From Amphiscolops sp. MND2022 (lineage: Eukaryota), in assembly GCA_964187785.1 (NCBI GenBank), contig OZ076409.1, positions 42,718,001-42,782,000 of the forward strand: a DNA stretch of 64,000 nt, in the 5' to 3' direction. The first letter of the stretch is position 1. Each line of letters opens with the position of its first letter. Shown piece after piece: positions 23,001 through 58,255 of the stretch. The translations under genes were made by a program, and so were the position numbers. The notes under the pieces are model-generated. The model was not told where the DNA came from. It was given only the letters and a program-made list of their open reading frames with translations, and did no database searches.

Positions 23001-26000
23001 CTTCCAGCTTTCCAGGAGAACAAGTAACGTTATACGTGAAGGGGTTGTCACCTATGGGTGCAGAAGGATGAGCCTCTAAATCAAAGTAGCGGGTATGCGT
23101 CCGTAATTGGGTTTCAGCATGTGACCCTTCAATGCCGCTGTAACATTTGAGGAAGTAAAGTCCGGAATGAAGAAATGGATTCAAGTTTTGGAATCTAAGG
23201 TAATAACATCTTCGAGTTGAATTACATTGCGGGTACTCGTCAGGGATCACTTCCCAAGTCACTCCCCGTTCGCCATTCACGAGTGGTGTCTCATCAGCAG
23301 GGTATAACCTGCCCCAGGTGCAGTTTTTGAAAGGGTTGCCGACCACACAAGATTTGAGCGAAACATCTTCTCCAAAACAAGGTTGGGTCAAGGAGCTATC
23401 TGTAGGCCGGCACCAATAGTCCAGAGGTTCAATGAAGTCATCAACCTTCATGTCTAGGAAAGTGGATTCAAATCCAAGTTGAAACCAATTAGATTCTGTA
23501 GTTATACTCTCATTCGCAATTTGCCTGCATCGGAATTGTTTAACGTCACTTTCTTCCGGAAACGGAACTTCGTATGTCACCCGTTCAGAACCTGTCAGAG
23601 ATTCGAATGTCTTGTTCTCATAAGAGCCTCGGGGAAGAGCTTCGCATTGTAGCGTAAAGAGGGGTGACCCATGAATGAGAGCACCTACAGTCTGTTTCAA
23701 CCCAATATTTACATCTAAAGGTTTGTATAAACATTTCCCGGGGTCCGCAAAAATGTCCCATACTTTTCCTCGTTGGTATCTGCAGAGTCTCGCTATCTCA
23801 ACATCTGCATTTTCAACCTGGGAAAAACCAACCTCTTGATCGAATTTCGCGAGCGTTAGAAGTCTGCGGTCCGAAGCCCTCTCCATGGAGAAGAATACTT
23901 CTGATGGATCAGCTTCTATGTCAGGCGAGTTTGGATTCATGCCAAAGTTACAGGTAAGAGCAGTCCAGAATTTGATCAAATTTATGTTGCCAAGCTCAAC
24001 TCTTTCGCTTTCAAGGTTCCTCAGAATTCGAGAAGTGATAGCATCTTCGGTATCTCGTACAAAAGTTCCGCCATCTCTGGCGCAGACATCCCTCGGCTCT
24101 TTATTGCCAAATGGGGGAAGCAAGCGGTAAAAGTAAAGAAAGCCATTGTCCATAAAAGCATCGTAAGCTAAGTATAAACCTCTTGGGTTTATGTCTTTCT
24201 GTGGTCTTGGCGTTACAATGCCAACATCGAAGACATTGTTGACATAAAACATTAGATATTGCTGTGTAGTCGTTTCTTTATCAAAGGACTCACAGGTAGC
24301 GGGTACAATCGGATTGTTAATTACATCGATGTCACAGTTTCCATCAAACGATCTTCCGAAATAGTAACAATGATCCACCGAAATGGGTGTCACCGCGAGA
24401 TAGTACCATCCTATATTCCATGGCTGGGTGCTGAGAATCCCAAAAGTCACTGTCGCTTTTCTGTTTTGCTCATCGAAGCTTAGACTTCTCAGTGCTCTTT
24501 TATCATACAGCAAAGATCGCTCTACTGTGTTTGTGTATTCGCAAGGATTAAGTTTATTGTACCCTGGTATGTCCATGAAATATTCAGCTTTCCAGAACTT
24601 CAGGGAGATGTTCAAAACGGACTCAGATGCAAACAAAGCTGAGTCTGTAAACAGGTGGTGATTGATATCACATGTTACTTCGACATCTTTTCCGTGCAGT
24701 ATGTCAGTGTTGCACCGTTCGGTGCATTCTATCTTGAAAGGATGAATGAACTCTGATTCCACTTGTTTCAGCTCTCCTCCCGCCTCCATGGAAAATCTGT
24801 AAAGCCCGGCTGACTTTGGGGACAAACCGAGAAACTCTAAAGTTCCAGTTGCCCTGACTTTGAGGTGATTGCCTGTACAGGTGTAAAAGTACTCAGTGCT
24901 CACTGCGGTTGACTCCGCTGTCCAGCCCCCATTGGGAGGTTGAAACGCATAGGTGAAGAAGTCCATCAAGTAACCAACAGATTGGACTTTAATTTTGTAA
25001 AGGGTGTCGTAATCCGTTGGTTCTAAGTAAACCGGTGTTTGGTCAGCACTGATGAACTTCAGCTCGTCGTGCGACCTTTGAAGCTCGAAAGTTCCTTTTA
25101 TGGCAACAAAAACTGTGTCGTTCTTCCTACGGCCAGCGACACATTCGATCTTAGCCAACACATCATTCGTGTCGACTTCGACCTCGTAAATAGCGACTTC
25201 GTCTTTTTTCATTTCGAACGTCCGGTCTTTATTTCTTATGACCAAGTCTCTGTTATCCCAAGCTTGACACACGACTTCGCGACTCTCGCGGGCACCTATG
25301 ATGACTGGTTGTACCCTGTACTTAACAATCGCCACTTTGTCACCCGATGCGTCCTTCACAGCACAACTCTCCGGCTCAACGGTGATTTTATTGATCTCCG
25401 CGTCATAAAAATAGCAAAATATGCCAGCAATGTTGTCATTATAGTCTCTACACTCTAGTACATCCATGAGACCAGTTTCCTTGTCTATATAAGTACACAT
25501 CTCTTTAACTGAATCTCGGAGATAGACGTACACTTTATCCGACACGTCATCGCCAATTTTTTTGCCCCACTTGCCGTAGATCATAGACTGGAGAAAAAAG
25601 TTGGTGTCAACTGCCTGAAATTGGGTGGCAAAGTATTCGCTGAGGACGTCGGCTCCTCCCTTTTGACTAGAGCAGGCGTCTTTGACCTTCAGAAGACGTT
25701 CTGGGTCTTCTTGGTCTAAGCCGTGGGGAAAATCGACCATCGTTACAAAGAAGTGACCCTCAAAAATGTTCACGTGGAAGTAGGATTCTCTTGGGTCAAA
25801 AGGCAGCTGTAAACATTTAAAACAATTTTTTAAATTCAAAATCAAATTCAATACCAAAGTTTATCTTTTCAAATAACCGATGTTACAGTACCATTTTTGA
25901 GAAAAACTATAATCATTCGATGATCATATTATGAACCATTATTTTCCGCCCATATTTTATATGGGAAAGGAAAATGTTTAATTCAAACGGGTTTTTTACA

Positions 26001-32944: not shown

Positions 32945-33464
32945 AAAATCCCACATTAACAACCAAAAAATTTAGTGGTCATCAACATTTGGTGCATCGA
33001 TTTATATTAAATGAAAGTTGTGTAGCCATATTCACCACCATAACCTTTAATCGTAAAAATAGTCGAAGCTAAATAGTGAAAAGATTAGTAATATGATAAC
33101 AGGTGCGAAAGTGCTGAAGATTAGTGACAACCAAAGTATCCAGTCGTCTAATGCACCTTGAAGTGATATTTGCTGGCTTAACCAGTATTACAAAATATGT
33201 AGACTCACTCAATTAAGCTAACGCATGACAGAAGATCAGAAAGGTGCTACTACGAAATAGAATACAACCAGTTGACCATTCGCTACCGTGATATTCAGAA
33301 GTTACTGTCTAAACTTGTCATAAGATTCTAGCCTAGCATTCAACTTAGTAAAATTACATTTCTGCATTCGAACCTTGGTTCAGTCCAAACTAAAACAAAT
33401 CTCATCTCCAAAAATGGTAAATACTAGATCACAAGTTCATAGAGAGAATCGAACCGAACAGTCA
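32945..33464 (+). repeat. Partial Gypsy-A LTR with gag start MVNTRSQ (ATG at 33414), running into the gap
   Basis: Homologous to 50615-50774 joined to 59210-59580, and carries a single uninterrupted GGTGC at 33102-06. Confidence 0.8.
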
Positions 33465-34330
33465 NNNNNNNNNNNNNNNNNNNNNNNNNNNNNNNNNNNN
33501 NNNNNNNNNNNNNNNNNNNNNNNNNNNNNNNNNNNNNNNNNNNNNNNNNNNNNNNNNNNNNNNNNNNNNNNNNNNNNNNNNNNNNNNNNNNNNNNNNNNN
33601 NNNNNNNNNNNNNNNNNNNNNNNNNNNNNNNNNNNNNNNNNNNNNNNNNNNNNNNNNNNNNNNNNNNNNNNNNNNNNNNNNNNNNNNNNNNNNNNNNNNN
33701 NNNNNNNNNNNNNNNNNTCAAAATTTCAGACAATATTAGGCACTCTGACCCCTTTTTGTGATTATACAGAAACGCTTTGAATTTTTTGCCCTTCTGGAGT
33801 CTCCCAAAAGATAGAAAGTGGAATGTTGAGCACGCCTTAGTTTGGTGGAAACGTCAAGAATTTTATGCCGGTGGGCTGGAGTCCTATTATTGCAGGAATT
33901 AGAAAATCTAGAAATTTTATTTTGTTCATGTCAAAATGAGAATATAGATGCTTTTTGATACTAACATGAGTGACAATTACGGGTTCAGAGGCGTTTAATT
34001 AGAATTCAACTTTTGATACCTTTCAAGTTTTTTTAAACCTTCTTATGATTATTTTCTTCCAGTCTCACCGTATTTCTAACTGATAAAATGTTTTCAACGA
34101 CTACTGTAAAGGTCCATTGATGTGCATATAGAGACGTTTCATACTTTCAAGGAAGACTATCAGATAACCTTCAACCCACTTTGGTAAATAGAGACGTTCT
34201 GGTTAAAACTCAAGTTACATATCAAGGTAACATATCATGAACTCAAAGCATTCAAACAACAAGTACTGGCTAAGTTGCCAAAAGAAACAAAGTAACAGGG
34301 ATAAATACAATGTCACAAACTCAAATCAAA

Positions 34331-36472
34331 TCAGTTTTTCGTGTTTTTCATTACATTTGAAAGCTTTTTAGTAGCCTTATCAAGTACCTTCTCACGATCA
34401 GCATTACTGAGCTTCATCAGCTTGCACAGGTCTCTGAGTTGGCCCCGACCTGTGTAGAACTGAGCAGCAACAACTTTGGTAAACAGTTCCTCGAGAAATG
34501 GTTGCAGGGGATCTGCAGGTCCTTTGAATTTCATCAGTTTTTCACATATAGCTTCCCATTTTGTCGCATCGTTTTCTCTAGTTTTCAATGGTCTTTCTGT
34601 TTCCCATTTGACCTTTACCCCTGGATCGGGCTTATAATCTTCATCGTCTTGGTCGCTAGGGATTGGTGTTGGAGCATCATCTTCACACATGTCATCCTCG
34701 TCAATCACCAATGAGTTGTTGTTGGCGTCTTCATTGTCAGGTGTCAGAGCGCCTCCGTCGACGTTTTCTTCCTGTGTATCACCAACGTTTCCCGTGTCCA
34801 TAGTTTCTTCTTCACTTTCGTGCTGTTCAGGATTGTCCTCTTGCTCAACTGGTGGTGGGGGCGGGGGATCGTCTTCGGCCACGTAGCAGCTTTCGGGGTC
34901 ATCAATTATCTTCAATTGCTCATCTAAGAAGCTTTCAATTTCATTATCGGTCGCCGGTTTCAGGTAGTATTTTCGACGTGTAGCCTCACAATGGCCAGTG
35001 TTCATCTGGTATAGCAGGGCATTTTGACCTGTGACAAACTGAGACTTCTCGAAGAAGGTATCCCATGCTTTTCGAACATTGTCGGGGTTATACAGCTTGT
35101 CGTCAATTCGAAAGTATTTGTATATGGCCTCCTTGAAATATTTGCCTTGGCAGGTGAACTTCTTGTTGGTGTTGGACGGAAAAGCGAGCTTAGGCGTCAG
35201 ACCATTGTTTTCTTCCTGGAAGTATTGATGAAGGTCATCTACCCATTTTCTATTCTCTTTTGTTATCCGTATGAAATTGGGAAACTTCGCCCCAGTTTTG
35301 TGCTCGAATGAAGTCATAACCTTCTTCTCTTGCATGACTTTATAGTCCTCAAAGGTCAAGTTCAGCAATGCACCGATTCTGCAGTTCGATTCTGAATGGA
35401 TTACAAACACCAAAAGGCATAAATATTCGAGGTAAGTGAACGAGCTGTAGACGTTCTGACCCAGCATTTCTTTAACCATTTGACGAAGATGGCTAACTTG
35501 GTACAAATTTGGCACCGAATCGAACCTGGCTTGCATACGCCGATTAAACTCATTCGAAGCCTCCTTTGCAGTCTTTTTCAGCAGGTTTCTGACCTCTCCT
35601 TTGAACAAAGCCATGTTGAATCTCAATTCTTTTTGTTTGTAGGAGTTGCAAAACTCGAGAAAACGATTGAATTCAAACATTAATTTCCGCATTGTTTGGA
35701 ACGTGTAGTTTTTTTCTGACTTGATTCGATAAAATGTTGACTTGACAGCCTCGGGTTTCCTCAAAAAGGACGTTCCACTAAGAATTTGAGCCAAAAAAGT
35801 CTTCTGGAAGCGGGTCATGTTTTCATCACCGGCCTCGTTCCGGTTCTCATCATACTCGTCGAGCAGTTTATGGTGGTTGAAAGTTTTTCCCCGTATACCA
35901 GGAATGTCAAAGCGGAAGTGTGAGGGGAATTCGTTCATAGATTTGGGGTTTACTTTGATAATTTCATGCTTTCTGCAAATTTTTTTGTGTTTCTTCTTTC
36001 CAGTGAACCTTATGAAGCAGCCGTTGCATTGGTACACTGTAGACACACAAATCCTTGTAGCATAAAAAGATAGCAAGAATTTTCGTTGTTGGGTTGTGAG
36101 ATTATGGCTCTTGGAGAAATGCTGTCTCAGATTCGCCACTTTTGTAAGGCAAAGTACACACTGTTTTACCCGTGGTTGTTTGGGCCGTTTGCCTTGCAAT
36201 TGGTTTCGCTGCAATTGTCTGCCTCGGCGCGTCGTTGTTTGTGGCTCATTTGAATTACTTGGTTCCCTTGGTTCAGAAACTATCTCATTGGGCGACTGAG
36301 CTTGCGTAGGCATATCAGAATCATCCAAAATTCGGCTTGAACATGCGTTGACTGACTCCATGATATCCATACAAGTTCTGTTCACAAGAGCGTTTGTACT
36401 CGGAGAATACGCCAATCCGGCAATTTCTGTGAGGTTGGAAATACAATCGAAGGACGTATCAGCTTGTGACAT
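34331..36472 (-). CDS. Intact zinc-finger tyrosine recombinase (YR1), 713 aa from the likely ATG
   Basis: C2H2 CVLC..H..H and CNGC..H..C fingers, a core-binding-like region, then R376 (NCRIG), K403 (HKTG), R478 (DNVRK), H505 (TGH) and Y514 (ORF-track numbering). Acidic linker and helical C-terminus; ACC-ATG context. Confidence 0.85.
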   Translation of the reverse strand: MSQADTSFDCISNLTEIAGLAYSPSTNALVNRTCMDIMESVNACSSRILDDSDMPTQAQSPNEIVSEPREPSNSNEPQTTTRRGRQLQRNQLQGKRPKQPRVKQCVLCLTKVANLRQHFSKSHNLTTQQRKFLLSFYATRICVSTVYQCNGCFIRFTGKKKHKKICRKHEIIKVNPKSMNEFPSHFRFDIPGIRGKTFNHHKLLDEYDENRNEAGDENMTRFQKTFLAQILSGTSFLRKPEAVKSTFYRIKSEKNYTFQTMRKLMFEFNRFLEFCNSYKQKELRFNMALFKGEVRNLLKKTAKEASNEFNRRMQARFDSVPNLYQVSHLRQMVKEMLGQNVYSSFTYLEYLCLLVFVIHSESNCRIGALLNLTFEDYKVMQEKKVMTSFEHKTGAKFPNFIRITKENRKWVDDLHQYFQEENNGLTPKLAFPSNTNKKFTCQGKYFKEAIYKYFRIDDKLYNPDNVRKAWDTFFEKSQFVTGQNALLYQMNTGHCEATRRKYYLKPATDNEIESFLDEQLKIIDDPESCYVAEDDPPPPPPVEQEDNPEQHESEEETMDTGNVGDTQEENVDGGALTPDNEDANNNSLVIDEDDMCEDDAPTPIPSDQDDEDYKPDPGVKVKWETERPLKTRENDATKWEAICEKLMKFKGPADPLQPFLEELFTKVVAAQFYTGRGQLRDLCKLMKLSNADREKVLDKATKKLSNVMKNTKN

Positions 36473-36659
36473 GGTGTCTGAAAATACAAGATTCTGAAAT
36501 TTCACATGAAATTAGATAAAAGGTGCAAATAGTTGACAGCGCGTCTCTGCCGTGTTTACTTTCAAATCACATTCACTTTGACAACGATTATATGACCGCT
36601 TATTATGCGAGAGTGCGTACAAATTACCTGCAGCGATGAGAAAAGTAAGCTTGAGCGAT

Positions 36660-36716
36660 TCTGATTGGTTCTTACGCTAATAAAATAAGAATTTAAGTCA
36701 CGTGATATTACGTCAG
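36660..36716 (-). promoter_or_regulatory. Possible YR1 promoter elements (CCAAT, CACGTG E-box, TGACGT)
   Basis: Motifs clustered about 190-240 bp upstream of the ATG; motif match only. Confidence 0.3.
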
Positions 36717-37001
36717 CAAGCATATTCTTATCTTCCCTACTGTTGAAACGTCTCTATATTCACTCAAAACAGTTGAAGCGAGTCTATATTCTAAAAAAGA
36801 TTTTTTTAAACCGTGAATGAATCGAACTGAAAACTATGCCGAAAAGTTTTATATTGCTTCGCGATTCAATAACGAATATCGAAAAAATTGTACCATTTGA
36901 AAAAAAAAAAATTTCTAAAATACTTTCCAACCCCCGACTAAAATTGCCAGAGAGACTGTCTGACCCCCCTTTTGGAGTTTCCTGGGTGCTGGAGCGTATC
37001 T

Positions 37002-37023
37002 GATCATCATGATGATGATGATA

Positions 37024-37093
<70 letters not shown>
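37002..37093. repeat. (GAT)n microsatellite, about 28 units
   Basis: Read directly from the sequence. Confidence 0.98.
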
Positions 37094-37736
37094 CCATTAT
37101 AGACGCTGTGTATCGGCCCTCGATCGTTAGAGATTGTATGTACAGGATCCCCATTTTCAGGTGCTTTTCCCTGGATTAGTTCCAAAAAATACCAAAGGAT
37201 TATCGTCTCTTATGTTCGCCTATTCTAGTCAATTTAATTCTTGACCCACAGACGGAATCTGACGTTGCTACGACGAGTTTTAGGAGAAATTTGAGAGCCG
37301 TTTAAAAAACGGAGTAATCAGCTTGAAAATGTAAAAAATGGAGACTCGGCGTACAAAATTTGTGAAAATGTAGTACTCTGTGTACAGCAAAATGAAAATC
37401 GGAGACTTCAAGTACAGTGCAAAAGTTGGTTGTATCAATAGTCCAACCATGGATTTAAAGTTAGCCTAGGGAACGTATTCGCCACGTACAATGTCAGTTC
37501 CGAGATACTTTTCATTTAGAAACGATTAAGGTTTTGAGTAAAAAAAATCGAGACGCTGTGTACACGCTTAGAAAATCAGAGATACTGTGTTTAGCTCAAA
37601 AAAAAAGAACAAAATGGCCTAGTTTTTTAAATTATATCAAGAAATACGAATACTTGAACATTGAAATGAATACAAAACAGTTCCGTATGAATGAATCAAA
37701 GTTGGAAACAAGTTTTGGTTGGGCGGAACAAATGTT

Positions 37737-39424
37737 TTAAAGGTCCAAATGCTTGCAAATGTTGTGGTATTTGGAGTACACTTTGTTGAGCACTGCTTCC
37801 TGGTCCTGCAAATTCATTTTCATTGGCAGCATGAGGTTCCGCATCTCTGTTTTGGCCAGTTTACCATCGACTTTGCTCAGGAGATCAATAAGACGAATCA
37901 TGCTCGCATGCAGTGGATCTCGTGGTCCCTTGAATGTTCGCATTCTTCTGTGCAACTCGTCGAGTTTGGATTCAGTCGACATTGTTGCTTTAGCATACCT
38001 TCCAGGAGCTTTTATAATTCCTGTCCTGGTCTTAACTGAGCTGAAAGAAAATGTACTACAAGTTGACAACTCATAATCTGAGTCTGTCTGGATTGGCATT
38101 AACACTTCCCTGAGGGGCTGTATCCAAATTTCCAAGAGTAACCTCGGACGCCGATGTATACAAAGGGTCTGTTGTATAGGCATCATCGTCTTCAATTGTC
38201 TTCGAACACGAAGGCTCGGGAACTTCTAGCTCGTGCGTGCTGAGGCCTTGGTGCATCAGTGGAGCCTGGTTATACCGGGATATCCATATGATCGTCTTCG
38301 ATTTGATTTTCGGCACTGTACACGGCGTCTCTGATTATGTCTCTCTGATGGGCAAGTAAGTCCTTTATTGCGTCTTCCTGCATCGGTGCGACGTAATGAG
38401 CTGCTGCTGTTTCATCGGTGTGTCCAGTGTTCGGAGACGCCATGTACAATGTGTTTTTCCACTTCTTTTGCCAGTTTTGCCACCTTTTTGAGGGTTGGGA
38501 CCTGTTCGAACCGCTTTTCTTTCCTAAGTTCGATCTCTTGATTCCGACTTTTCTTTGTTCGCTTCTGATAATCGTTAATTTCGTTCAGAATCGAAGTAAA
38601 TTGTATCCGTATTATTCAGGATCTGTGCCGTTGAAGCCATGTTATGAAGTCTTTTAGGGCAACAAGGAGCTTACTCATTGAATTTTGTGTATAGCCATTC
38701 GTTTCTTTGTACTCCTTCAGCACTGTTGCCACTCTAGCAGTGTCACGAAAGTGGTCACTCTTCGAGAACACGGCTTCAATGAAATTTCTTTTGAACTGAC
38801 TGATTTCTTGACCTTGGGCTTCTCGAATTGAATTGCAATATTCCTCCAACAATTCAGCAGATTTAGGCCCTAAATCATTTCGTTCTGACAACTCCTGTAT
38901 CTGGGGTGAAAATTCTTCATCTGATTTCTTATTTCTGACCTTCAGGATGATGTGTTGAGGGAAATCATTATTGTGTCTCCTGGGATTCGTCATCCTCAAG
39001 GGCAATTAACACACTGTGAAACTGGACCGCGGACGTTTTTAGTACAATAGAACAACATCAAGAACTTCCGGTGCTCTGATAGAAGGTTTCTTTGATCTTT
39101 GTCAAGGTGCTGTCCTATTTTTGCGACTTTTTTGCGGCAAATTGTACAGTCACGTACTGCTTCCTTCGATGTTTTTTTGTGAATTTTTCGCCGTTTGGAA
39201 GTCAAATTGGCCTGCCCATGGGTTGGTTCTTCTTCTAGAGGAACTTCAACCTGTGTAGAAGTTGCCGCCGGAAGATCAGCGGCGGGGGAGAGTTGTAGAC
39301 CGAGATCTGAGATGGTATTCAGGTCAAAAGTTGACATTTCGGCTAGTTGTCGGTCGATCATTTCCGAGGTCTCATTCCTCAAAATACCAATAACAGTTGG
39401 TTGTAATGCCTCTTCTTCGCTCAT
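37737..39424 (-). pseudogene. Second YR paralog (YR2), frameshifted, catalytic core deleted
   Basis: Collinear homology to YR1: CTICRKKVAKIGQHL/RKFLMLFY, RFEQVPTL vs RFDSVPNL, NTGHTDETAAAHY vs NTGHCEATRRKYY, FKGPRDPL vs FKGPADPL. About 150 aa carrying R, K and R are absent. Confidence 0.85.
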
Positions 39425-39966
39425 GGTAATGTATTGGAACAATTATAACCAGAAAACAATTTTTCGTTCAAATTTTTAGACCGACTGATCAGTAGGAAGC
39501 TGTAAGAGAAAATGACACCTGTCAATAATTTATTAAGTGTACACAGCGTCTCTGAAATAGAAAAAGACTCAAAATTTTCCCACCTGCTAATATTATTTGA
39601 CTCAAAGTAACTATACACGTTTGCACGTGCTAGCACTTCCTTTGAGGGGAAAATTAGAAGTAGACGCTGAAGAAAAGTTGCGGCTTCAGTCAAAAGTGTT
39701 GTTGTACAATGAGTCTCCGATTAGTCCAAAATTATACAAGTAGTCCAGGACTTTCAAAATGTCATTTTTTGAGCTTTGATGGGAACCGCCTGTTTTTTCG
39801 CTTGTGGAATACTGTTGAAATTTTGAATTTATTGGCGGGATCAAAAGTAGGGAGTTCGAAAAAAAACATAATAAAGTTTCCGTGAGATTTCTGGTACATA
39901 GGGTTTTGGGTGTTTTGGAGACTCAGTGTATACTCCGGGAAAACTTTAGGACTACGATGGATCTCC

Positions 39967-39973
39967 GATGATC

Positions 39974-40011
<38 letters not shown>

Positions 40012-40014
40012 AAT
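39967..40014. repeat. (GAT)n microsatellite, about 15 units
   Basis: Read directly from the sequence. Confidence 0.98.
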
Positions 40015-40053
40015 ATTAGTGTGATTTTCCACTTTTGCGGTATATGTATCGTA

Positions 40054-43000
40054 ATGGTGACAGGAGTCTCGACGAACTCAATCCCAACTCCAAACTTGCA
40101 GCAACCACACAGGACCCCAACTCCTGCAATCCACCAGAAAAGAGGACATTCCCAATCCGTAAACGAACTACAAATGGACGACGACATGACGGAAATCCAG
40201 AATTTGCGCACCACAATGACTGATGGAGTGATGCAACCAAAAATATTGAAAACACAAGTCCCTCTCTTCCGCGGAAACAGAGAGAAATACAATGAGTTTT
40301 ATCACCTGCTCAAAAATCATGTCCGCCCACACATGCACAAACTGACGGAAGAGCAGAAACTCAACTACTTTCAAAGCCTGCTCAGGGATGACGCCATGGA
40401 ATTCTGGCAAACAATGAAAATAACCACCTAAACGACGCTAAGAGACGTCTTGCAAGCTTTCAACAAGGAGTACGCGGAGAAAGACCTCAAAGAGGTGTCG
40501 AAATACAAATTCGACCAAACGAGGTACAACCCCACTACAGCTTCGTTTGCCGACTTCAACACAAAATACAAGAAGCTTGCAAAACAGGCGTATGGAGAAA
40601 AAGCCAACGATATTGCTGAAACATTTTTGTTTGCCAACCTACCAATCCAGATACAAAAGGAATTGGCCATGGCAGGCAAGAACGACGCAACAATCAAGAC
40701 GTTCGTGCAAGGACGCTGCCAGTAGGCGTAGATACTACCGGAACATCTGGAATGCAACCCTTAAACCAGATACAAAACTACCCTGAAAGACAACAAGGGA
40801 ACCAACAAGCCCCTACTAACAGTAAATAACGCAAGCGAAACACAAACAAAGAAGTCAAGAGGAAAATTGAAGCCAACTGCAGGTATTGCACCACTGTCGG
40901 TCACAAGAGGATCAAATGGCGAAAACGTCTCAGAGACGCGGCTAATAGAATAAATACAAAAACCTACCACATTCCACAATCAGACAACAACAATGCCCAA
41001 CCACAACAAAACAACAAACCACGATACAATGCGAAATGTGTTTGCCAGAACTGCGGGAAAGTTGTACACTATGCCCGAGATTGCAGAAATAGAGTAAAAG
41101 GTGCTTCCGCCTACCGGAACGCACCATACAAGCAGTCAACATCCGAAAACCGAGAGTTCCGACGGGATTTTAGACAGTCATAAAAATGAAACCAGACGAT
41201 GTCTCAGGTAACCCAGGAAGCAACCCAACCGACACAAACTGAAGACCACAACGACTGTTACAACGAGGAGTACAATGACGAATTCCACTCCAACTCGAAA
41301 AACCTGTAACGCCACGTCATCCTCCACTGAACCAGACTACAAATGCTCGCAACAAACTACATTCTAACAACCACTACAACTCGACGACCAGGACATCAGA
41401 ATGTCGGCAGCATTCTAAAAAACAGACTAAACCCTCTTGAAAATACTACGTACAGAAAGTTTCTCACAATAACTACCACATCCTTCCTCTAATTGGCGAT
41501 GACTACCTCGAAACCAAAACAAGAGACGAAAACATACCCTGACTAAGAGGAAAATTCAACTAACGCAAAACCGGAAAACCACACGAAAAACCACGCGAAG
41601 TAACCAATGACCATCAGACCATTGAGCGCTACCCTACAACTCGATAGAAGAAACAAGATGATCTAAGTCCCTCTACCTAGTTCAAGGAATATGAGAACTA
41701 CGGATTGCTCGACACAGGAGCATTCCAGAGCGCAATGTCTGAAAACGAACTGAGACGGATACTCCAAACAAAACCAGCCGCCCAAATCGAAGAATTTCCA
41801 ACCCCGGACTTCAAAGTCTAAGTTGCCAATGGGAGTATCGTCCCAGTAAGGAAACAGTTCTTTCTTCGTTTTTTTTATTGGGGGAATAGTTTTCGAAGAG
41901 ACATTCATGATTCTACCTAAAATGTTGAATATCCTGATAGGAATGTCCTTTTTCAGAAAATTCTTTGTGACTCTGACCTCGCAAACAACATAGTAAGATT
42001 CCCAGAGATTACCCTCCAACTCAATTGGCCAAATGGGAAATTGAAATTACAAATGTTGGATCACAGAAGACAATCATCTCAACCAGACAAAAAGTATTTG
42101 TTCCTGTGATTGCAGAAAAGGACATCGGCACAGTGACAGGCACAGTAGAAGCGTTCCCGGCCGTTGAACGTAAGACAGAATTACTAGAGTCTCAACAGAT
42201 GTCCAGATTACCAACCACCTGGACCACACCATAACAATTCCCCAAAACTCGACAGTTGCAGTATTCAAAATCCTGACTCCAAATCAAGCCTAAAACGTAC
42301 AGTCAATGACAATCGAACAACTGACCATGATCTCCAACTTTCCAGACGAAGGAGACAGTGTGATCAATCAGTTGTACCAGGACCCTGGTGCATCCAGAGA
42401 CAAACGTGGTACCCGGCACCCGAGACATGCGACGATCCTGACATACTCAACAGGAACGAGCGTCGCTTAAACGACGAAATCATCCCACTCCGAGAACCTG
42501 AATAACATGATCCCACATGTGACGACGAGCAACGACAGACGTTCCTCAAGAAATTCCGCTGTGACGATTCAATCCTCGATGAGCAGGAGCAACAGAAGAT
42601 TGAAGCACTGCTGGTCAAATACCACATGATTTTTGCACGCCATCGATTAGACATCGGTATCAATAACGATTTCAGAATCAAGTTAACACCTAAACATGGT
42701 GATTCTGTGTACGCGCAAAGTCTACCAAAGCCAACCAACCTGAAAGATGACGTACTGGAAGAACTGGCCCTCATGCAGTGATACGGGATCACGGCGACGC
42801 TTCCGTACGGTTCCGTATACTTCCCTGATATTTGCACAGTGGAAGCCACATGGCAAACTTCGGATACTAATGGACTTAAGTGGCATCAACTATCTCCTCA
42901 AGAACGACTATAATCAACACAATCACCCAGTCACAACAAAAGCAGATGCTGCTCAACAAATGGCTGGCAAGAAGTATTTCTGCAAACATGATTGCTCACA

Positions 43001-45790
43001 AGCTTACCACTGCCGCCTTCAGATGCTTTCAATCAATACAGCTTCTTGCATTCAACTTTGGCAGCTGAACCTTTGCGTACCTCCGGCTTGCTCAAGGGTT
43101 AAACATATCTTTGTCTGCGTTCAACAGTGCAATCCGACAGTACCTGCACTAGAGAAAGCAGCCAAATGTGCACAGTATGTCGACAACATCGGGATTGCTG
43201 CAAACAATGTGGATCAGCTGATAGTCAACATCGAGGCAGTATTTCAGCAGATACATAAGGCAGGACTAAAACTCTCGATGTCAAAGTGCCCCTTTGGACA
43301 CCCGAAGATCGAATTCTTGGGTCGGAGCATCACGTCTAAAGGCATCGCACCCCTCGAAGACCGCATCGACAAACTCCTCGAAATCTGAAGTTGCAAACGT
43401 TAGTCAAGTCGCTTCAACGATACATCGGATTTGTGCAGTTCTATAGACAGTACATCCCCCCGAAAGTAGGCGAAAAGTTTCTCCCACTGTACAAACTGTT
43501 GTAGGAAGAAGTCAAGTTCGCACTGACGCAAGGACACAAAGATGCGATTTTCGACATCAATGAGAATCTGGCACGAGCTGCAAAACTGTCACTCAGACTG
43601 CTACGACCCGAAAAACAACTCGTCATCATGTGTGATGCAAGCGAACACGCAGAGTGGTACGTGCTTCTCATCGAAGACTACACAGAAACCAACGAGGGCA
43701 AGAAGAAAACGTACGCATCCGTATCATTCGGTTCCCAGTGGTTAACCGAAGACCAGATGTCACTGACCATGTACGCCAAAGAGTTCCTTGAAATGCACTT
43801 CACCTTCGACTAATTTGCTGACATGTTGTGGGGAGTCAGAAATGTTACGAAAACTCCCAGAACAACAACAACTCGGTGTAATCAATACCCACAATGACTT
43901 CACCCAAATGCGATCTTTGCTGCATTCCCTCGCGAGCAACCATTATCAGCATGACGACGACCATGTCAAGATGATTCAGATCATCAGTCGTCACCTCGAG
44001 CCTGTCCTAGCAAGGAGGCTCCCTTCATCATGCTGACGAAGTTTACCCGGCGTCACTTCTCCTACACGGTAAACCAGGTATTCCCGCAAAGGGATTCACG
44101 AACAACCCAGGATCAGTTAGGTAACCAGGACGTTCAACAAGAGGTTCGCGTTTTGGTAAATAACGAACCACTGCCGAACCATGTAAACTTTGCTAGAACT
44201 TTTATCCGATAACTTGATTTTAAAAAAAAAACAGAAAACGTCATGAAGTAGTCAACAATGTTTTGTACAGGAACTTTTTTGATAACACTGGTAGAGTTCT
44301 ATTGAAACAAATCGTTGCACCTCCAAAAACTACTATGCCCAATTTCAGGACGATGCATGGGAAGTCTGGGGCATTTAAAATGTTGGTAGACCTCCAGGTC
44401 TTAGTCAGCACGTTTCAAAGTATGTAAGTAACTGTACCGAATGTATGAAAGCCAAACCTAACGACTCAAGGCGACTAATCCCCCTTTGGAGAAAATCTTT
44501 GACCCCCACAATGGCCCTGAAGACGTACTTGAGATCTATCGGGTGAGCGACTACCTATTTCCAACTGCCATACGCATATCATGACAGCGTGCGATTACCT
44601 CTCACGTTACCTGTTTGCTGTTTTGATCCGATAACCAGACACAAAATCTGTAGTGAATGCTCTCATGCAAATAAACACTGAGCATGCATATATCCCAAGA
44701 CGATCATCACTGATAAAGGCACAGTCTTTACCTCAAACATCATGACCGAAATTATGAGAACTGCTGGAATCAAAATCGAACACGCGACTGTAAAACATGC
44801 TCAGACCATTGGCATGGTGGATCGCTCCCACCAAAGATTGAAGCAGGTTCTGAAAATCAACGTTTCAGTTGACTCCCCTCAATGGGATAAGTGCGTTAAT
44901 CTGGCAGTCAAGGCACACAACACCACCTACCACAAATCACTTAACTGTACACCAAGCGAACTGTTTCACGGTAGGAATCCGTTTACCGCGCTGGACCTTA
45001 CGTTCAGCAACCCTCTGAAATACGAAACAAAAGAAGCCGACATAGCAAAACTAGTCGACCAAATGAAAGAAAAGTACAAACAGGTCAATGACAACATATT
45101 CCAAGCCTACCACACGTACAAAAGGTTTAGCGACCGTAAAGCTCAGGCGTTGCCGTTAAAAGTTAATGAGTTATCGTTCCTTCTCAACCCTAAATCACAA
45201 CTCAGTCTGACAAAATCGCATTCAACCACTTCAAATGGGAAGGCCCTATCAAGGTAGTCAACGTCTTAACTAATTTTAACTTTATAATCAGGAAAGTCAG
45301 CATTTTACGAACACAGTACGTTCACATGATGCAATTACGTCCTCTCATCTCGAACGCACCCATACCGGACATTGAAGAAAACTCAACCCTCTTTTCGCTA
45401 ACCTAACGCGGCTGACGGGTCAAGAGCTCTTCAATGACCATATTCCTCAAAATATTTGTTTTTAACCAACACCTGTACCTGACGAACGCGAAGAGATTGA
45501 TACATAACACGACACCATATATTATGAGCACGCACAAAAATTGATTGACTGAACGCAGTTACAACCGATCCACGAAAATTCTCCTCAAACTTTGGAGCAA
45601 CCACCTGACGACCCCAGCGTCAAAACAACCACAAACGACGAATACCGGGTTGAACCTGATGAAGCTGTAATAGACAATATTGAACTGACAAGCACTAGTA
45701 ACAGAACACAAGTCACGTCGCGAAACAACTGTACCCGATATAACTTGCGGTCTGAACCAAACCCCAAAACTTAACGAGTTTTTTTGTTCA
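40054..45790 (+). pseudogene. Gypsy gag-pol with many stops and frameshifts
   Basis: Gag PLFRGNREKYNEF, CCHC CQNCGKVVHYARDC, protease LLDTGA, RT DCSQAY/YVDN, RNase H MCDAS, integrase TACDY/ITDKG/MVDRSH, terminal RYNLR. Confidence 0.92.
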
Positions 45791-48959: not shown

Positions 48960-51725
48960 ACTTCAATATTATCACGCAAACAAGAGGTAAGACGCCCATG
49001 GCACAACAAGAGGTACGACAAACCAACGCCATGTTAATCAAACCAACCAGGCAGAATCCAAATCAATCATTTCTAATCACACTAAATACCGTCCAAAAAA
49101 GAAAAAAACAAAAGCCACTTCAACACTGCAAAACGCGGTCGTGAAAGTCGATCCTCGAAAACATGAACATCGAAACTAGGTTGGGCTCTGACAGCCGACG
49201 ACACAGTAGGACGGTGCGTTCCGAAATATAGATTCAAATCGTCCCATCATTCGACTAACTCTGTAATTAACTGCGCTAGCTCCACAGTAGTTTGTCTCAT
49301 CCGCCCGCACGTAGTAGAACAAACAGCACACCATATTGCCAAAATATCGAACAACCAATGTACACCTACCAAACCCACTCCCCCCTCGCCAACATCCTCG
49401 CACTTCAAAAAACCGCAGAAATAGAGCATAAAGAACTCACTCAAGCGAAAAGTTAATATTACAACAATCGAAACAACTCTAACAAAGTATACTTACACGC
49501 CGCAGTTCAGGCAAACTGTCAAAAGGCCGGTCATCAATGACCCCGGTCATTCGAAACTTCAGGAATTCTAGCACACTGTATAGGTCCACACCACTCATTT
49601 GTATAAGAAAGCGGGTTCTGATGACGTTTTGCATCCACCACAAGTCAAAGACCTACATGACCACTGGCACAGTCGGTACAGCCACGCTCGCAATAGCCCG
49701 GCCCTCAGCAGGGTAATTGTCTACGCACACCACGCCCTAATTGGAAATACAGTCCACGCAAGACAACGCAGTTGCGACGATACGGGACAAGCTCGACTGT
49801 TCTCCAGGCCGTACAGCGCCGACAAGCACTGCTTTCAACTCTTTTCCGTCCACAAAATTACTGTCAAATCTCCACTGAAACAACTCCTGAGTGAGTCTCG
49901 CACCAACACGACACCCCCTGTTGGGTTAACTCACTGAGCTGCTCAACCACGTACGCGTACAATCCGTATAACACCAGACTCTGAAACACGAAACATACGG
50001 TGAACTTACAATGATATCGGAACAAATTACCATACGACAGACACAAACCAGGCTCACAATTACTGTACGCAAGCAATGTAACCCCCTTTTATCTCAATTT
50101 GGCAATAGGAACAAAATACTTTCTAGCAATTACTTACTTGGCATTTTGGGTGAGTCAAAGAACGCTCCACGAGATCCAGTTCACTGCGCATGCAAACGGT
50201 GCTCAGCACCTTTCTAATGCCCCACAGTTTGTTGAGACCGCGACCGGCAAAACTGATGTCAACTCTGCCCATGAGACAACGGGCATACCCGTCGATACCG
50301 CGCTTGTGACACCGAAATCCCACAAACAAACCGACCACGCTGGATACCAAGTACGAAGGCTTCAGTGTATTGATCTTCAGTTTTCGCACTAAAACATAAC
50401 ACATAAAACATTAACCGTGTTGCTCCGCAAAGAAAAAATGGTTCTATCTTATTTAGCCCTTAGTGTTTTTGTATCCTGAACTCCTAGTTTTGGAAACGTG
50501 AATTCCTAAGAGTAAGTCACGTTCAAATTACACCTAAAACCCCTCATGAGATTTTATGAGATTCTTACCAGGTTTGCTGTCAGACGTCGATGGCAAAGCG
50601 ATAAGCCCTCCACAAAATGCCACAGAACAACCAAACGATTCAGTGGTCATCAACAATTGGTGCATCGATTAATATTATATGAAATTTGTTTAGCTCTCAT
50701 CACCACCATAACTTTTAACCGTAAAATTAGTCGGATCTAAAAGATGGAAAGGTTAGTATTATGATAACAGGTGCTGCTGGCGCCAGTCAATTGCGAGATC
50801 AAAAACTCAAATTGGAACGTGACTGATGAAACTTAGCACTCAAAACTCTGTGAAAAATGATCAAGATTTTGGTTGGAAAATTGCAACTTCTAGCTAAATT
50901 AGCCGTGTGTAAAAAACCATCATCCCCTTTTTTGAGAAGCACTTGTCCAATGACCCTGACACTTAGCACGCAAATACTAGAGGTGCTAACTCAACTTTTC
51001 ACTCAAACCACCCTACCTCGTATCTCCCCTGGGTTCCGAGCAGTTATCTCTGTTGAAATTTATTATATTTACATTGTGTAAACATACTTTCTAGCCCACC
51101 TAACCAACATGCCAAAACCACCACATAGTTTGTTTACTTATCCAATAACTTCATTTTACGCTTTGAATGTCATTAATTTATACAACATATTCCAACTGAT
51201 ATTTGCCAAATTTACTGTAGAATTGTAAACCACATTTATACCAGTATTAGATAGAGATTTTCTCCACTGAATAGATATAGTCAAGTTGGGTCTTAGGACC
51301 AAGCGACTAATTGATAAACTTCTTAATCTTCACAACTTTTCGCTAGAGTTAGAGCGACTAAGTAGCTACTCTCATAGTTGGAGAGCCGGAGCGCGTGAAG
51401 ATACAGTGAGGGAAGTGTGTGCAGGATCACATCGGATCCAACAAGTGCAAAGAGGGATCGCAAGAGATTCCTACGGGTCACATCGGACCCACCAGCTAAA
51501 AGATACAGTCCTTTAAACACGAAAAACCAGTAATTGCTTAGTGACGGTCCACAGCACTAAGCAACGGATCAGGGCGGCGTAAAGCTTGTCAAGCCTCAGC
51601 GCAGGGCAAGCAGCCGTTACATTTGGTCCGCCGACCCGGACGAGAAGACGAAGACGACTCGTTGGTGGACAACTGAGAAGATTGCCCAAGAAGAACAAGT
51701 GTCTGGATCTTGGAATCTCTGATTT

Positions 51726-51930
51726 TGTGTCTCTGAGAGATTGGGCTGCTCTGTCTCTGGGAGATTGGACTACTGTGTCTCTGGGCGATTGGGCTAATGT
51801 GTCTCTGGGAGATTGGGCTACTGTGTCTCTGGGAGATTGGGCTATTGTGTTTCTGGGAGTTTGGGCTACTGTGTTTCTGGGAGATTGGGCTACTGTGTTT
51901 CTGGGAGATTGGGCTATTGTGACTTTGGGA
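51726..51930. repeat. 24-bp minisatellite, about 8.5 copies, in the BEL leader
   Basis: TGTGTCTCTGGGAGATTGGGCTAC units. Confidence 0.9.
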
Positions 51931-52059
51931 ACTGAGAGAGAACAGATGGCTTAACCAAAGCGGTTTGAAATCAACAAAGTTGAAAACTTTCTGAAGAACT
52001 CTGCAGACAACGCGCAAACGCGGAGTTATAGGAATGCAGCTGTCGAGCACGGAAAGTCG

Positions 52060-55000
52060 GTGAAAGAAATTGATGAAAAACTAGCTAGCAATGATGACAA
52101 CAAACAGATAGCAGAACTACTGTTACGACGAAGAGATGCCATAAACAGGCGAGAACGACTCAATAAACGACGAAAATTCAATAAAACTCAAGTATCAACC
52201 GCAGATACCCGAAATATTCTCAGCAGTGAACAAAGCATTAAAGAGTCGATTTGTTGAGTTGCAGCAACAAAACTCTAGCGTTGGAAAGTTGATAAGAATA
52301 ATGTCAGCATTGCAAGATGAAAATCAGATTTTGAACTATCTGGATCTTGAAGGAAAGAAACGTGCTATTGATGAAAGAATCGTACACAACAAAAAGTTGA
52401 GCGATGAACGAATTGAAAACGGTGAGGACGCCGAAGCAGATTATGCAGCAGCATTTCAAGAATTGCTTCAAAAGAGGTCTGACCTCAAAGTGAAAATTGA
52501 AGCTCTCCTGAAGTCAAGAGAAACTGGGGCCATTTTGCGAAGCCTTGAAGACGCCGAACAAAGACTAGCAGACGTTCGCGCAAGCGTAGCCGCAGACAAA
52601 TCAAGTAAAAATGGCACTTCACCACAAAAGGCGCTGCAACCAGACGATGAGCAAAAAGAACATGATGGTCACAACGCGGATGACAGCCAAGAACCAAAAA
52701 ATGTGCTGGATCATTGCCAATAGTAGAATTAAGCATACATTCGCGAAGTAAAGGACCAAAAGCAACAAAACATCTGTGATTTCAAAAACATCAAGTGCAA
52801 GACGAGTTCTCGAATTAGAGTTAAAAGCTTTGAAAGAGCAAAAAGAACTTCAAACCCGCCTAGAGAAACTGAGACGTCAAGCAAACGAAGTTAAGATAGC
52901 TAGCTTGCAAGATGAGATGGTTGGCTTGCGAAAGGAGATGGCCTGCAAAACCAAAATTGCTGAAAAGGAACTACAAATGGCGCAAGCGTCGAGTAGTGGT
53001 GGGTCTAGTTTCAGACGTATCTCACCAGTCGGGACCCAGATGACAATCTGACGAAAATCTCAGGATGAATGGACAAAGCAGAAGAAACTGAAAACGTGGC
53101 ATCGTCGAATATCGTGCCATTTGTACACCAGCAAACGTCCGTCTCAGCACCAGTGATTACAGTACGGTCAACTCATGGAGGACAATGCTCCTCGCAAGTG
53201 AGGGACTTGAAGCCCTCATTGAAACCGGTCATGTCCACAGAAGCCGCTGTGCGAGATATTGGAGAAGACGGAACAAAGACTGTCATAGGTGCTGGAAGTC
53301 AAAGAGCAACAGCGCAACCAGAATTGAAGTTCGCCTCATCGAAGGCGTCGATGACCCTCAGTACAGACCGGAATCGGTTACCACTTACGTTTGGAGGCAT
53401 CCAGAGTGGTGCATTTCAAGTCCCACAGGTTGCGAACACACAGAAGCAGTATTTGTCAAGTCAAGGGCCAAACATGGCGTCGAACGCGAGAGATCAGATG
53501 AGGCTTGCCAAAACGGAAGTTGGCAGAATTCTCAGGTGACCCATTGGAGTGGCCAGAGTGGTCACAACTATTTCAAGCAACCGTCCACGCAGCAAACATA
53601 GACGACAGTGTAAAGATGAATCACTTGAAAACAATGATAACGGGTAAAGCCAAAGAGGCGATTGCTGGCCTTGGGTACACCGCGGAGATGTACAATGTGG
53701 TGTGGAAGGTGCTAGTTCGAAACTTTGGAAAACTGCAGATGGTTGTGAATGCTCAACTGAACTGAATATACTCTTTTCCCCCAATGAAACCTTATGATGG
53801 AGCCGCATTGATCAAGTTTGCGAGAATAATGTCGAGTTGCGTGAATGTTTTGACACAATTCAACTACGTGGGAGACCTAAATTCAGAAGGAGTTCTGGGC
53901 AGTGCCACAAGGAAGTTAACACTGGACATGAAAACGAAGTGGCTCACTTATGTCAAGCAAATGAACCTGTATCAACCCGGACTCGCTGTGTTCAGTGAAT
54001 GGCTCAATGATATAGCAGATGTACAAGATGAACTGCTTCTACCTTTAAACCCGAATGCTGATCGCGCGAAGTCGAGCTACAAAGAAAAGGCAAAGGGTTC
54101 CACGTTTGCAACTTCCGCCACAAACACTGCCAGTGACAACTCGAAATACCAGCGAGAGTGTGCGCTGAAAGATGGCAAACATCCAATATGGAAATGTGAG
54201 AAGTTCAAGAAGATGAACGTCGAAGAAAGAGGACAACAGGCGAAAGAGTTGAAATTGTGCTTCAAATGTTTGTCAGACGCACATCAGATGAGAAATTGCT
54301 GTAAGACTCTGCGACGTAAATGGTTGCGGAAAACCTCATCACAGATTGCTACACAGACCAAACAAGAACGTGGAAGAAACGAAAAATGTTGAAAGTGTCG
54401 ATGAGGTCTCAAACCTGTCCTCAATGAGAAGCAGTGGAGTGCTTCCAGTATTCCAGTAACGATAGGGAGTGGGAGCAAAACTCTTAAAACGTTCGCTTTG
54501 TGTGACTCTGGAGCAAGTCTGTCCTTTGTAGACGAGAGCCTGATGAAAACGCTAAATCTGACAGGACAGCCAGTGGATTTGAATGTTGCAGGGATTCATG
54601 GTACCTCAGATATTAGTAGCAAACGACTTCGAGTCAGGATTGGAGATCAAGACAGAAAGGTCAATGAAGATAATATGGCTTTTAGTCACCCCAATGTAAA
54701 TGCAGAAAATCGAACGTACAACCTCAAGAAATTGAAAGAAACATATCCTCACCTGTCAGTTTTGAAAGACTCTACCATCAGCTTGTATGAAGTGAAAGTC
54801 ATCTTGGGTCAAGATTGCTACCATTTGCATAGAGCAATCGACTATAGAAAGTGTGGAAACGCAAAGCACTGGGCAGTGCGAACGAAGCTGGGATGGATGC
54901 TCAGTGGGCCATTGCCTCAACATGAGACAGCAAAACTTGCAACTGAAAGCTTAGTTGTAGCTGAAGTGGACCCATTAGCGGATCAAGTGAAGTCTTGGTG

Positions 55001-58000: not shown

Positions 58001-58255
58001 GGAATGAGAGATTTAAATGGAATAAAGAAGAAGTTAGACAACTTGAAGTCAATGATTTGGTTTGAATAGTAGATGAGAATGTGAAAAGAGCACATTACAA
58101 GATGGATAGAGTGTTAGAAGTCTATCATGGAAGCAATGGGCGAGTGAGATCAGCGCTGGTGAAAACTGAAGAAGGAAAACTGAAAAGACCAGTAGTGAAA
58201 CTGGCACCCATGTTCCACGAAAGTGTTTTTCGGGAGAAAAACAGGGCCGGTAATG
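52060..58255 (+). pseudogene. BEL/Pao gag-pol, fragmented
   Basis: Coiled-coil gag, FSGDPLEW region, Cys-His knuckles (CALKDGKHPIWKC, CFKCLSDAHQMRNC), protease CDSGAS, RT FYMDD, integrase SDNGTNFVGA, C-terminal GRVRSALVKT. Confidence 0.93.

Follow-up and report, generated by a model that had tools for sequence, protein, structure and literature searches.

The locus considered here raises the question of what, if anything, recognises the many copies of a bipartite motif, GAGAC-N5-GTACA, that are found around and inside the recombinase element YR2 of Amphiscolops sp. MND2022. The stretch of DNA analysed, which is referred to below as the window, comprises 64,000 nucleotides (nt) of contig OZ076409.1 (positions 42,718,001 to 42,782,000 of the forward strand), and coordinates given without a prefix are positions within it. 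An original prediction, made from the letters of the window, described the motif copies as phased binding sites for the recombinase or its zinc fingers in an att-site architecture. Our analyses indicate that the motif is probably the cis-acting recognition site of a family of microsatellite-associated, Crypton-like tyrosine-recombinase transposons, which are approximately 3.3 kilobases (kb) in length and encode no reverse transcriptase. The original prediction had overlooked that the interval is an entire transposon bounded by (GAT)n, that the gene of the YR2 copy is dead, and that the phasing of the sites is one of pairs.

Motif copies and the YR2 element

The pattern GAGAC-N5-GTACA was scanned over both strands of the window, with the chance level taken from dinucleotide shuffles. 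Seven exact matches were recovered at the same coordinates and on the same strands as had been predicted, all of them within 37341-39717 and none in the rest of the 64 kb, whereas the shuffles lead one to expect 0.06 (maximum 2), and the predicted enrichment far above chance is thus borne out. Matches with one mismatch add three further copies (37130, 39884, and 39918), and matches with three mismatches are found at 37100, 37579, and 37372, scoring 12.5, 10.1, and 4.2 bits respectively in the 20-nt matrix described below. The sites at 37100 and 37579 recur at an equivalent place in relatives and are upheld as near matches of the original prediction; that at 37372 is weak. A further degenerate copy, at 39951-39965 on the minus strand, was absent from its list.

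Column counts for 55 distinct sites, drawn both from the window and from its relatives, indicate that GAGAC-N5-GTACA belongs to a longer site of approximately 20 nt, in which bases are also preferred at positions -3 to 0 and in the spacer at positions 6, 7, and 10. With a 20-nt weight matrix, sites of 10 bits or more number 11 in 37100-39932, whereas the other 61 kb contain 3, as expected of background, and the terminal and subterminal copies share this one motif. The predicted spacing of about 30 nt is real for pairs of copies, viz. 30 nt (37100/37130), 29 nt (37550/37579), and 34 nt (39884/39918), beside a spacing of 61 nt (37341/37402), and these pairs do not form a single long periodic array. 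Scans of the window against Rfam and for tRNAs gave no match, and the motif is therefore not part of a known RNA.

The element that carries these sites is in the window a single unit of 2.9 kb, complete in extent but defective, whose bounds can be read directly, to within a few nt, from the points at which homology to its closest copies stops. These copies, on the metagenome-derived contig L001, are 94–97% identical to the YR2 unit and include an intact gene for a protein of 709 amino acids (aa). The features of the element are as follows, with other loci denoted by the letter L and a number.

37001 to 37093, no strand: (TGA/GAT)31 microsatellite, left boundary of YR2, common to the neighbouring element YR1; all family members in 6 loci have this repeat at their bounds
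37094 to 39966, minus strand: YR2 element, defective copy of an approximately 3.3-kb tyrosine-recombinase DNA transposon; 94–97% identical to L001 copies, with homology stopping at the microsatellites
37100 to 37114, plus strand: terminal copy at the gene-distal (3') end, 12.5 bits, 6 nt from the microsatellite; equivalent place in L001, L005, L006, and L003
37130 to 37144, plus strand: subterminal copy, 1 mismatch, 18.5 bits, 30 nt from the terminal copy
37341 to 37355, plus strand: subterminal copy, exact
37402 to 37416, plus strand: subterminal copy, exact, 61 nt from the 37341 copy
37550 to 37564, plus strand: subterminal copy, first of a pair, exact, 26.2 bits, in a Tandem Repeats Finder (TRF) row of period 28
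37579 to 37593, plus strand: degenerate partner of the 37550 copy, 29 nt on, 10.1 bits; better preserved in L001 and L006
37737 to 39424, minus strand: YR2 gene remnant with zinc fingers, core-binding domain, catalytic-domain stump, and C-terminal tail; 95.5% nt identity to the intact gene L001:125-2254
38317 to 38331, minus strand: intragenic copy, exact, coding as R-D-A-V-Y-S; third-position identity 0.86 over five lineages
38434 to 38448, plus strand: intragenic copy, exact, V-H-G-V-S on the gene strand, convergent with the 38317 copy; its 15-nt window is 7th of 1250 for nt identity
39092 to 39148, minus strand: first C2H2-like finger (C-x2-C-x9-H-x4-H in relatives), last zinc-ligand position substituted in YR2; beta-beta-alpha in the model
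39538 to 39552, minus strand: exact copy, oriented as the gene, 128 nt upstream of the ATG; counterpart 95–158 nt upstream of the located ATGs in L002, L003, L004, and L006
39703 to 39717, minus strand: copy 293 nt upstream of the ATG, exact, conserved
39884 to 39898, plus strand: weak subterminal copy at the 5' end, 1 mismatch yet only 6.9 bits; found in all close copies
39918 to 39932, plus strand: subterminal copy at the 5' end, 1 mismatch, 19.9 bits, 34 nt from the 39884 copy; exact in L001, L005, and L006
39951 to 39965, minus strand: degenerate terminal copy at the 5' end, 7.2 bits, inverted relative to 37100, abutting the right-hand microsatellite
39967 to 40011, no strand: (GAT)15 microsatellite, right boundary, beyond which the DNA is that of a retrotransposon leader and not of the element

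The gene of this copy is defective by direct comparison with the intact gene of L001, from which it differs by six breaks, viz. four frameshifting insertions or deletions (three of them small and one a deletion of approximately 0.45 kb) and two premature stops. The 0.45-kb deletion takes out most of the catalytic domain, and the convergent intragenic copies are 117 nt apart in YR2 compared with 539–566 nt in intact relatives. The YR2 copy retains all of its non-coding sites despite the dead gene; because the catalytic domain is lost and the whole site set is kept, we regard it as a non-autonomous relic.

A site map kept across lineages

Five YR2-type lineages, with pairwise protein identities of 40–70%, were recovered in our analyses. 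The sites are observed to keep one order, orientation, and spacing throughout lineages A, B, and C and, for the parts covered, in the partial contigs L002 and L004, and the map is kept in relatives of only 40–54% protein identity. Read in gene orientation, it begins with the microsatellite and a terminal copy, followed by one or two opposite-strand copies approximately 40 and 75 nt further in, and by two gene-strand copies approximately 270–295 and 95–158 nt before the located ATG. Inside the gene a convergent pair, 539–566 nt apart, brackets the catalytic domain; past the stop there is a pair 29–30 nt apart, then one or two single copies, and the 3' end carries a terminal pair 30 nt apart that stands 6 nt short of the next microsatellite. 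The terminal copy at one tip is inverted with respect to that at the other, plainly so in L005:7619-10866, L007, and L008 and in degenerate form in YR2.

When the non-coding DNA of different lineages is compared, no match exceeds 40 nt, and nearly all of the matches fall on sites. A matrix trained on only the window's ten sites finds 9–10 sites per 3.2-kb unit in lineages of 43–44% protein identity; the YR1 element next to YR2 yields 0, and the remaining 57 kb yield 3. The shuffle control for this matrix is a weak swap shuffle, and the counts for YR1 and for the remainder of the window provide the better control. Of 1250 windows ordered by nt identity, those on the two intragenic sites come 7th and 16th; both sites belong to the four best-conserved stretches of the gene, and their third-position identities over the five lineages are 0.68 and 0.86 compared with a gene mean of 0.43. 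A test of codon identity at these sites over all five lineages was marginal (3 of 6 vs. 16%, p = 0.07), and our claim of intragenic conservation rests on the windowed nucleotide and third-position test, not on codon identity. The motif also varies by lineage, position 15 being A in 9 of 11 lineage A sites and G in 8 of 10 lineage C sites (p = 0.001).

A second variant of the motif is found in the element next to YR2, with which it shares the microsatellite 37001-37093 and approximately 26% protein identity:

33718 to 37000, minus strand: YR1 element, paralogous family, with an intact 724-aa open reading frame (ORF) at 34331-36505 and a variant motif (GAGACG...) in the same layout

All YR1-type units (in the window, L001, L007, and L008) have a YR2-like layout, in which GAGACG is followed by a different 3' half. 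Because of the conservation of the map, the intragenic conservation, the shift at position 15, and the variant motif of YR1 taken together, these comparisons point to a reader of the sites that is encoded by, or co-evolving with, each element family.

The family-specific variants bear on the alternative that survives best, although we consider it unlikely, viz. that the copies control transcription, as promoter, enhancer, or terminator modules or as host-factor sites, and are not recombination sites. This would accommodate the two copies at a conserved distance upstream of the ATG (128 and 293 nt, and 95–295 nt in relatives with a located ATG), and the array past the stop could mark 3'-end formation. 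However, a host-factor site is not expected to differ between YR1-type and YR2-type units in one genome, nor to shift together within a lineage; the outermost copies stand at the very tips, inverted, against the microsatellite, and the six same-orientation copies downstream of the gene are hard to account for in this manner.

It is less probable again that the copies are functionless passenger repeats, i.e., internal duplications inherited by descent, and this explanation is already disfavoured. The 29–30-nt pairs could come from tandem duplication (TRF period 28), and no significant extra conservation of the motif is seen among close copies, but the copies hold their position at 40–54% protein identity while the non-coding DNA no longer aligns, and two of them lie in coding sequence with their synonymous positions conserved.

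The recombinase, its microsatellites, and the probable insertion site

The intact 709-aa protein of L001 comprises two C2H2-like fingers, a core-binding domain, and a catalytic domain. Its close relative P0019 (99% identical) gave an AlphaFold2 model with a predicted local distance difference test (pLDDT) score of 80–90 over residues 90–520, and in a Foldseek comparison of this model with the PDB the best matches are XerA, the Tn1549 integrase, XerD, and Cre (probability 1.0, 340–380 aligned columns). These matches span both the core-binding and the catalytic domains, and the matches in the viral library BFVD are VLF-1 and phage integrases. The recombinase fold is in this way established on the model of a close relative, and the family protein is by predicted fold a two-domain tyrosine recombinase. 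In an alignment of 13 family members both C2H2-like fingers are conserved, and boxes containing R, HKTG, RK-x-W, NTGH, and Y are present in at least 90% of the members; the histidine preceding the second R is not retained in the family.

The catalytic domain is recognised by fold comparison alone and not by sequence profiles. Searches of Pfam and of PDB sequences with YR1, with pieces of YR2, and with the 13-member family profile gave no significant match of the catalytic domain, the match to Phage_int_SAM_1 being sub-threshold (E = 0.028), and there is no Pfam match to the integrase or DUF3504 models. A similarity of the fingers to Ros/MucR zinc fingers is likewise sub-threshold (E = 0.44 vs. 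PDB; best Pfam E-value 7.5e-4, in 3 of 13 members) and we place no reliance on it. A phmmer search with the N-terminal piece over 1.8 billion representatives found 9 proteins, and word searches gave 9 relatives for YR1 and 5 for YR2; all of the family proteins found stem from ENA metagenome assemblies.

There is one long ORF per 3.3-kb unit, and all RVT_1 matches fall beyond the bounds of the element. When long repeats, inverted or direct, were sought within 30–48 kb, microsatellites alone were obtained, and repeats of the DIRS or Ngaro type are therefore absent. From the elements of these two groups the present unit differs in having no reverse transcriptase/RNase H ORF and no split or inverted long repeats inside it.

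An abundant 2.5-kb deletion derivative of YR2 is also present in several loci (L001:3028-5423, L001:8903-11299, L005:1795-4189, and L006:7889-10281). Of the sites it keeps one intragenic copy and every non-coding one, and its 218-aa product consists of the finger domain only; the 184-member cluster of P0019 includes many 218-aa members. This derivative may be a non-autonomous element or the source of a finger-only regulator.

The (GAT)n repeat is found at both ends of approximately 20 units in the 6 loci with complete units, as well as in the window, and it has one fixed orientation, the gene strand reading (ATC)n in 8 of 8 loci. In every long locus the units stand head to tail and are joined only through the microsatellite, with different subfamilies (full-length YR2, the 2.5-kb deletion derivative, YR1, and lineage B) alternating in varying orders, and in the window, L006, and L003 the arrays stop at the repeat against unrelated DNA. 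The flanking tracts are 45–93 nt long in the window and 0.6–1.2 kb long in the most distant lineage (L003:1-657, 3909-4500, and 7751-8952). One further locus, L007 (ENA ERZ25067548, contig ctg93953_2x_c, 21 kb), was flagged as circular by the assembler and contains tandem YR1-like units with 0.4–0.9 kb of microsatellite between them; the circle could be an effect of assembly or a circular multimer.

The manner in which the array entered its present position can be followed by means of the long terminal repeats (LTRs) of the surrounding retrotransposon. An LTR copy at 32945-33464 lies to the left of a gap of N letters, and its partner LTR consists of 50614-50774 and 59202-59572, split by a nested LTR element. 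Homology of the left flank (33099-33464 with 59202-59572) ends at 59572, and 18 nt past this point the right flank of the array (39999-40022) finds its match at 59590-59613. The counterpart of the array in the paralogous LTR copy is the following:

59590 to 59613, plus strand: probable empty site; the paralogous LTR copy has only GATGAT where the YR1+YR2 array sits

From this alignment the YR1+YR2 array looks like an insertion into a spot that has only GATGAT in the partner LTR. Because the probable empty site holds only GATGAT, the comparison suggests that the long GAT tracts arrived with the elements or grew later.

These observations on arrays and junctions bear upon two other explanations, both of which we consider more improbable still than passenger repeats. 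In the first, the arrays would be iteron-like or partition sites that maintain or copy an episomal circle and serve not, or not only, in integration. Direct-repeat arrays do look like plasmid iterons, L007 comes from a circular-flagged contig of tandem units, and Cryptons caught active gained copies although excision was seen (PMC9977147). However, the units encode no replication protein, the flagging of L007 as circular may have arisen in the assembly of a tandem array at 2x coverage, and all of the copies seen are chromosomal arrays with host junctions. With equally little probability, the units would be immobile, forming a complex tandem satellite (gene plus microsatellite linker) spread by unequal crossing-over, as the head-to-tail arrays in every long locus might lead one to suppose, but different subfamilies alternate in different orders, the arrays end cleanly at the microsatellite against unrelated DNA (window, L006, and L003), comparison with the paralogous LTR copy marks the array as an insertion, and the protein has a recombinase fold. 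Each of the four explanations considered here and above fits some of the data and fails on the family-specific, tip-anchored, position-conserved pattern of the sites.

The window also contains other mobile elements. The host of the array is a BEL/Pao-like LTR retrotransposon (32945-33464, 39910-43388, 50614-50774, and 59202-59613) whose gag-like ORF (DUF1759) spans 39910-40431 and which has a fragment of RVT_1 at 42747-43388. Nested inside its 3' LTR is a second LTR retroelement (50775-59204), whose own LTRs (50775-51621 and 58254-59204) are approximately 92% identical and which has an RVT_1 ORF at 55200-56078. A MULE-type DNA transposon at 19034-21477 has inverted ends (19037-19173 and 21341-21477) and a transposase ORF at 19931-20983 (Pfam MULE, E = 4e-14), and an ORF of 1274 aa on the minus strand (22033-25857) has no Pfam match at E < 0.1.

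Proposed recognition of the element ends and related systems

The interpretation of the motif as a recognition site of the transposon is favoured because the copies are conserved in position and orientation, YR1 has its own variant of the motif, position 15 shifts between lineages, the synonymous sites of the intragenic copies are conserved, and the tips are inverted at the microsatellite. According to this interpretation, the element's own protein would bind the sites of approximately 20 nt by means of its two N-terminal C2H2-like fingers, its core-binding domain, or both. Once the element is excised or circular, the GAT tract flanked by the two inverted terminal copies would be the crossover region, and the subterminal pairs, 29–34 nt apart, may help in assembly of the recombination complex, in the manner of the arm of lambda attP or the internal sites of multi-site ends. 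The two copies upstream of the ATG would additionally make autoregulation possible. The original prediction is in this respect upheld in part: the recombinase sites that it proposed fit the conserved map, the family variants, and the inverted tips, and multi-site transposon ends are a likelier parallel for them than an att site of the lambda type.

Several observations weigh against this interpretation. The 5' terminal copy of YR2 itself is poor (7.2 bits), the left junction of the array, on the YR1 side, is hidden in the N gap 33465-33717, and among close copies (approximately 89% identity) motif positions are kept at 95% compared with 89% for their surroundings, a difference that is not significant (p = 0.12). 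The use of one motif as both terminal and accessory site is unlike classical att sites. The GAT spacer between terminal copies is 30–1200 nt in integrated arrays compared with a strand-exchange span of 6–8 nt, and because it far exceeds this span we infer that the integrated arrays do not fix the crossover point. The convergent intragenic pair has no role in the proposed model, and binding by the element's own protein is a step to which we are led by conservation and anatomy.

A more far-reaching proposal, which we put forward tentatively and consider doubtful as a whole, is that the family represents an undescribed site design in which the 20-nt motif serves as inverted core and as accessory arm, and a trinucleotide microsatellite of variable length is the crossover region and travels with the element. 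As part of the same proposal, the element would seed and lengthen (GAT)n on landing and so make its own next targets, and the intragenic convergent pair would be an added self-control.

Cryptons in general (see Goodwin et al., 2003, and Kojima and Jurka, 2011) have been described as recombinase-only DNA transposons that are without terminal inverted repeats and have direct repeats of 4–6 base pairs (bp) as presumed recombination substrates (PMC3212892), and the model for their integration, of a circle into a matching target, is backed by events observed in Chlamydomonas (PMC9977147). The present family resembles them in its single recombinase gene, in having no reverse transcriptase, and in bearing the same sequence at both termini. 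It differs in that this shared terminal sequence is a GAT tract of 30–1200 nt and not 4–6 bp, in that the tips bear imperfect inverted motif copies, with several more per end, whereas Cryptons are without terminal inverted repeats, and in having no Pfam integrase or DUF3504 match.

The CryptonV group of Repbase comprises tyrosine-recombinase DNA transposons of which some families are microsatellite-specific (Kapitonov and Jurka, 2012, Repbase Reports 12:2034, as reported in PMC8869645). As there reported, CryptonV shares with the present family a tyrosine-recombinase DNA transposon and insertion into microsatellites, a likeness of description, and differs in having been described from cnidarians. 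Microsatellite-specific insertion is borne out by our loci, the target in the paralogous LTR being only GATGAT. Microsatellite-specific Cryptons are already on record, and the family described here is a variant that is set beside CryptonV by description. It behaves like a microsatellite-specific Crypton, and the accessible Crypton descriptions mention neither its multi-site ends nor its imperfect inverted tips nor its finger domain; site arrays at the ends are likewise not described in the accessible Crypton literature. If the CryptonV entries of Repbase are the same family with the same ends, our finding reduces to another member of a known group.

Endogenous nimavirus recombinases, which are specific for telomere repeats or ribosomal DNA, combine a C2H2 zinc-binding domain with a SAM-like domain and enter simple repeats, and they have non-viral relatives in decapods (PMC10871703). 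They are likened to the present family by description and differ in belonging to giant viral genomes that lie in (TAACC)n or 28S ribosomal DNA, as against a 3-kb element in (GAT)n. Lambda attP and Tn916/Tn1549 also have multiple recombinase sites on both sides of the crossover and an extra N-terminal DNA-binding domain in the integrase, and the Tn1549 integrase is among the best structural matches of the P0019 model. In these systems the arm and core sites differ in sequence, have separate reading domains, and involve host bending proteins, whereas here one motif is found in both positions and the N-terminal domain is a zinc-finger pair. The inverted terminal copies of the family have 30–1200 nt of GAT between them in integrated arrays, the inverted core sites of a lambda-type att site an overlap region of 6–8 bp, and no circle junction was seen. 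The ends of Mu, Tn7, and P/hAT-type elements have the same binding motif at the tip and subterminally, in unequal numbers per end, as is the case here; these elements differ in having DDE transposases and target-site duplications in place of a tyrosine recombinase.

To our knowledge, next to nothing has been established on how Cryptons, as the recombinase-only transposons of eukaryotes, recognise their own ends, and published descriptions ascribe no terminal structure to them. The present family offers an end architecture that can be read, with a family-specific motif, inverted tips, subterminal pairs, and a fixed orientation to the microsatellite, and it opens end recognition by Cryptons to sequence censuses, structures, and occupancy maps. 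For annotation, it accounts for the arrays of unnamed ORFs of 200–720 aa that lie between GAT repeats in metagenome-derived eukaryotic contigs. The family also provides a concrete case of a mobile element that is tied to the birth and growth of a trinucleotide microsatellite.

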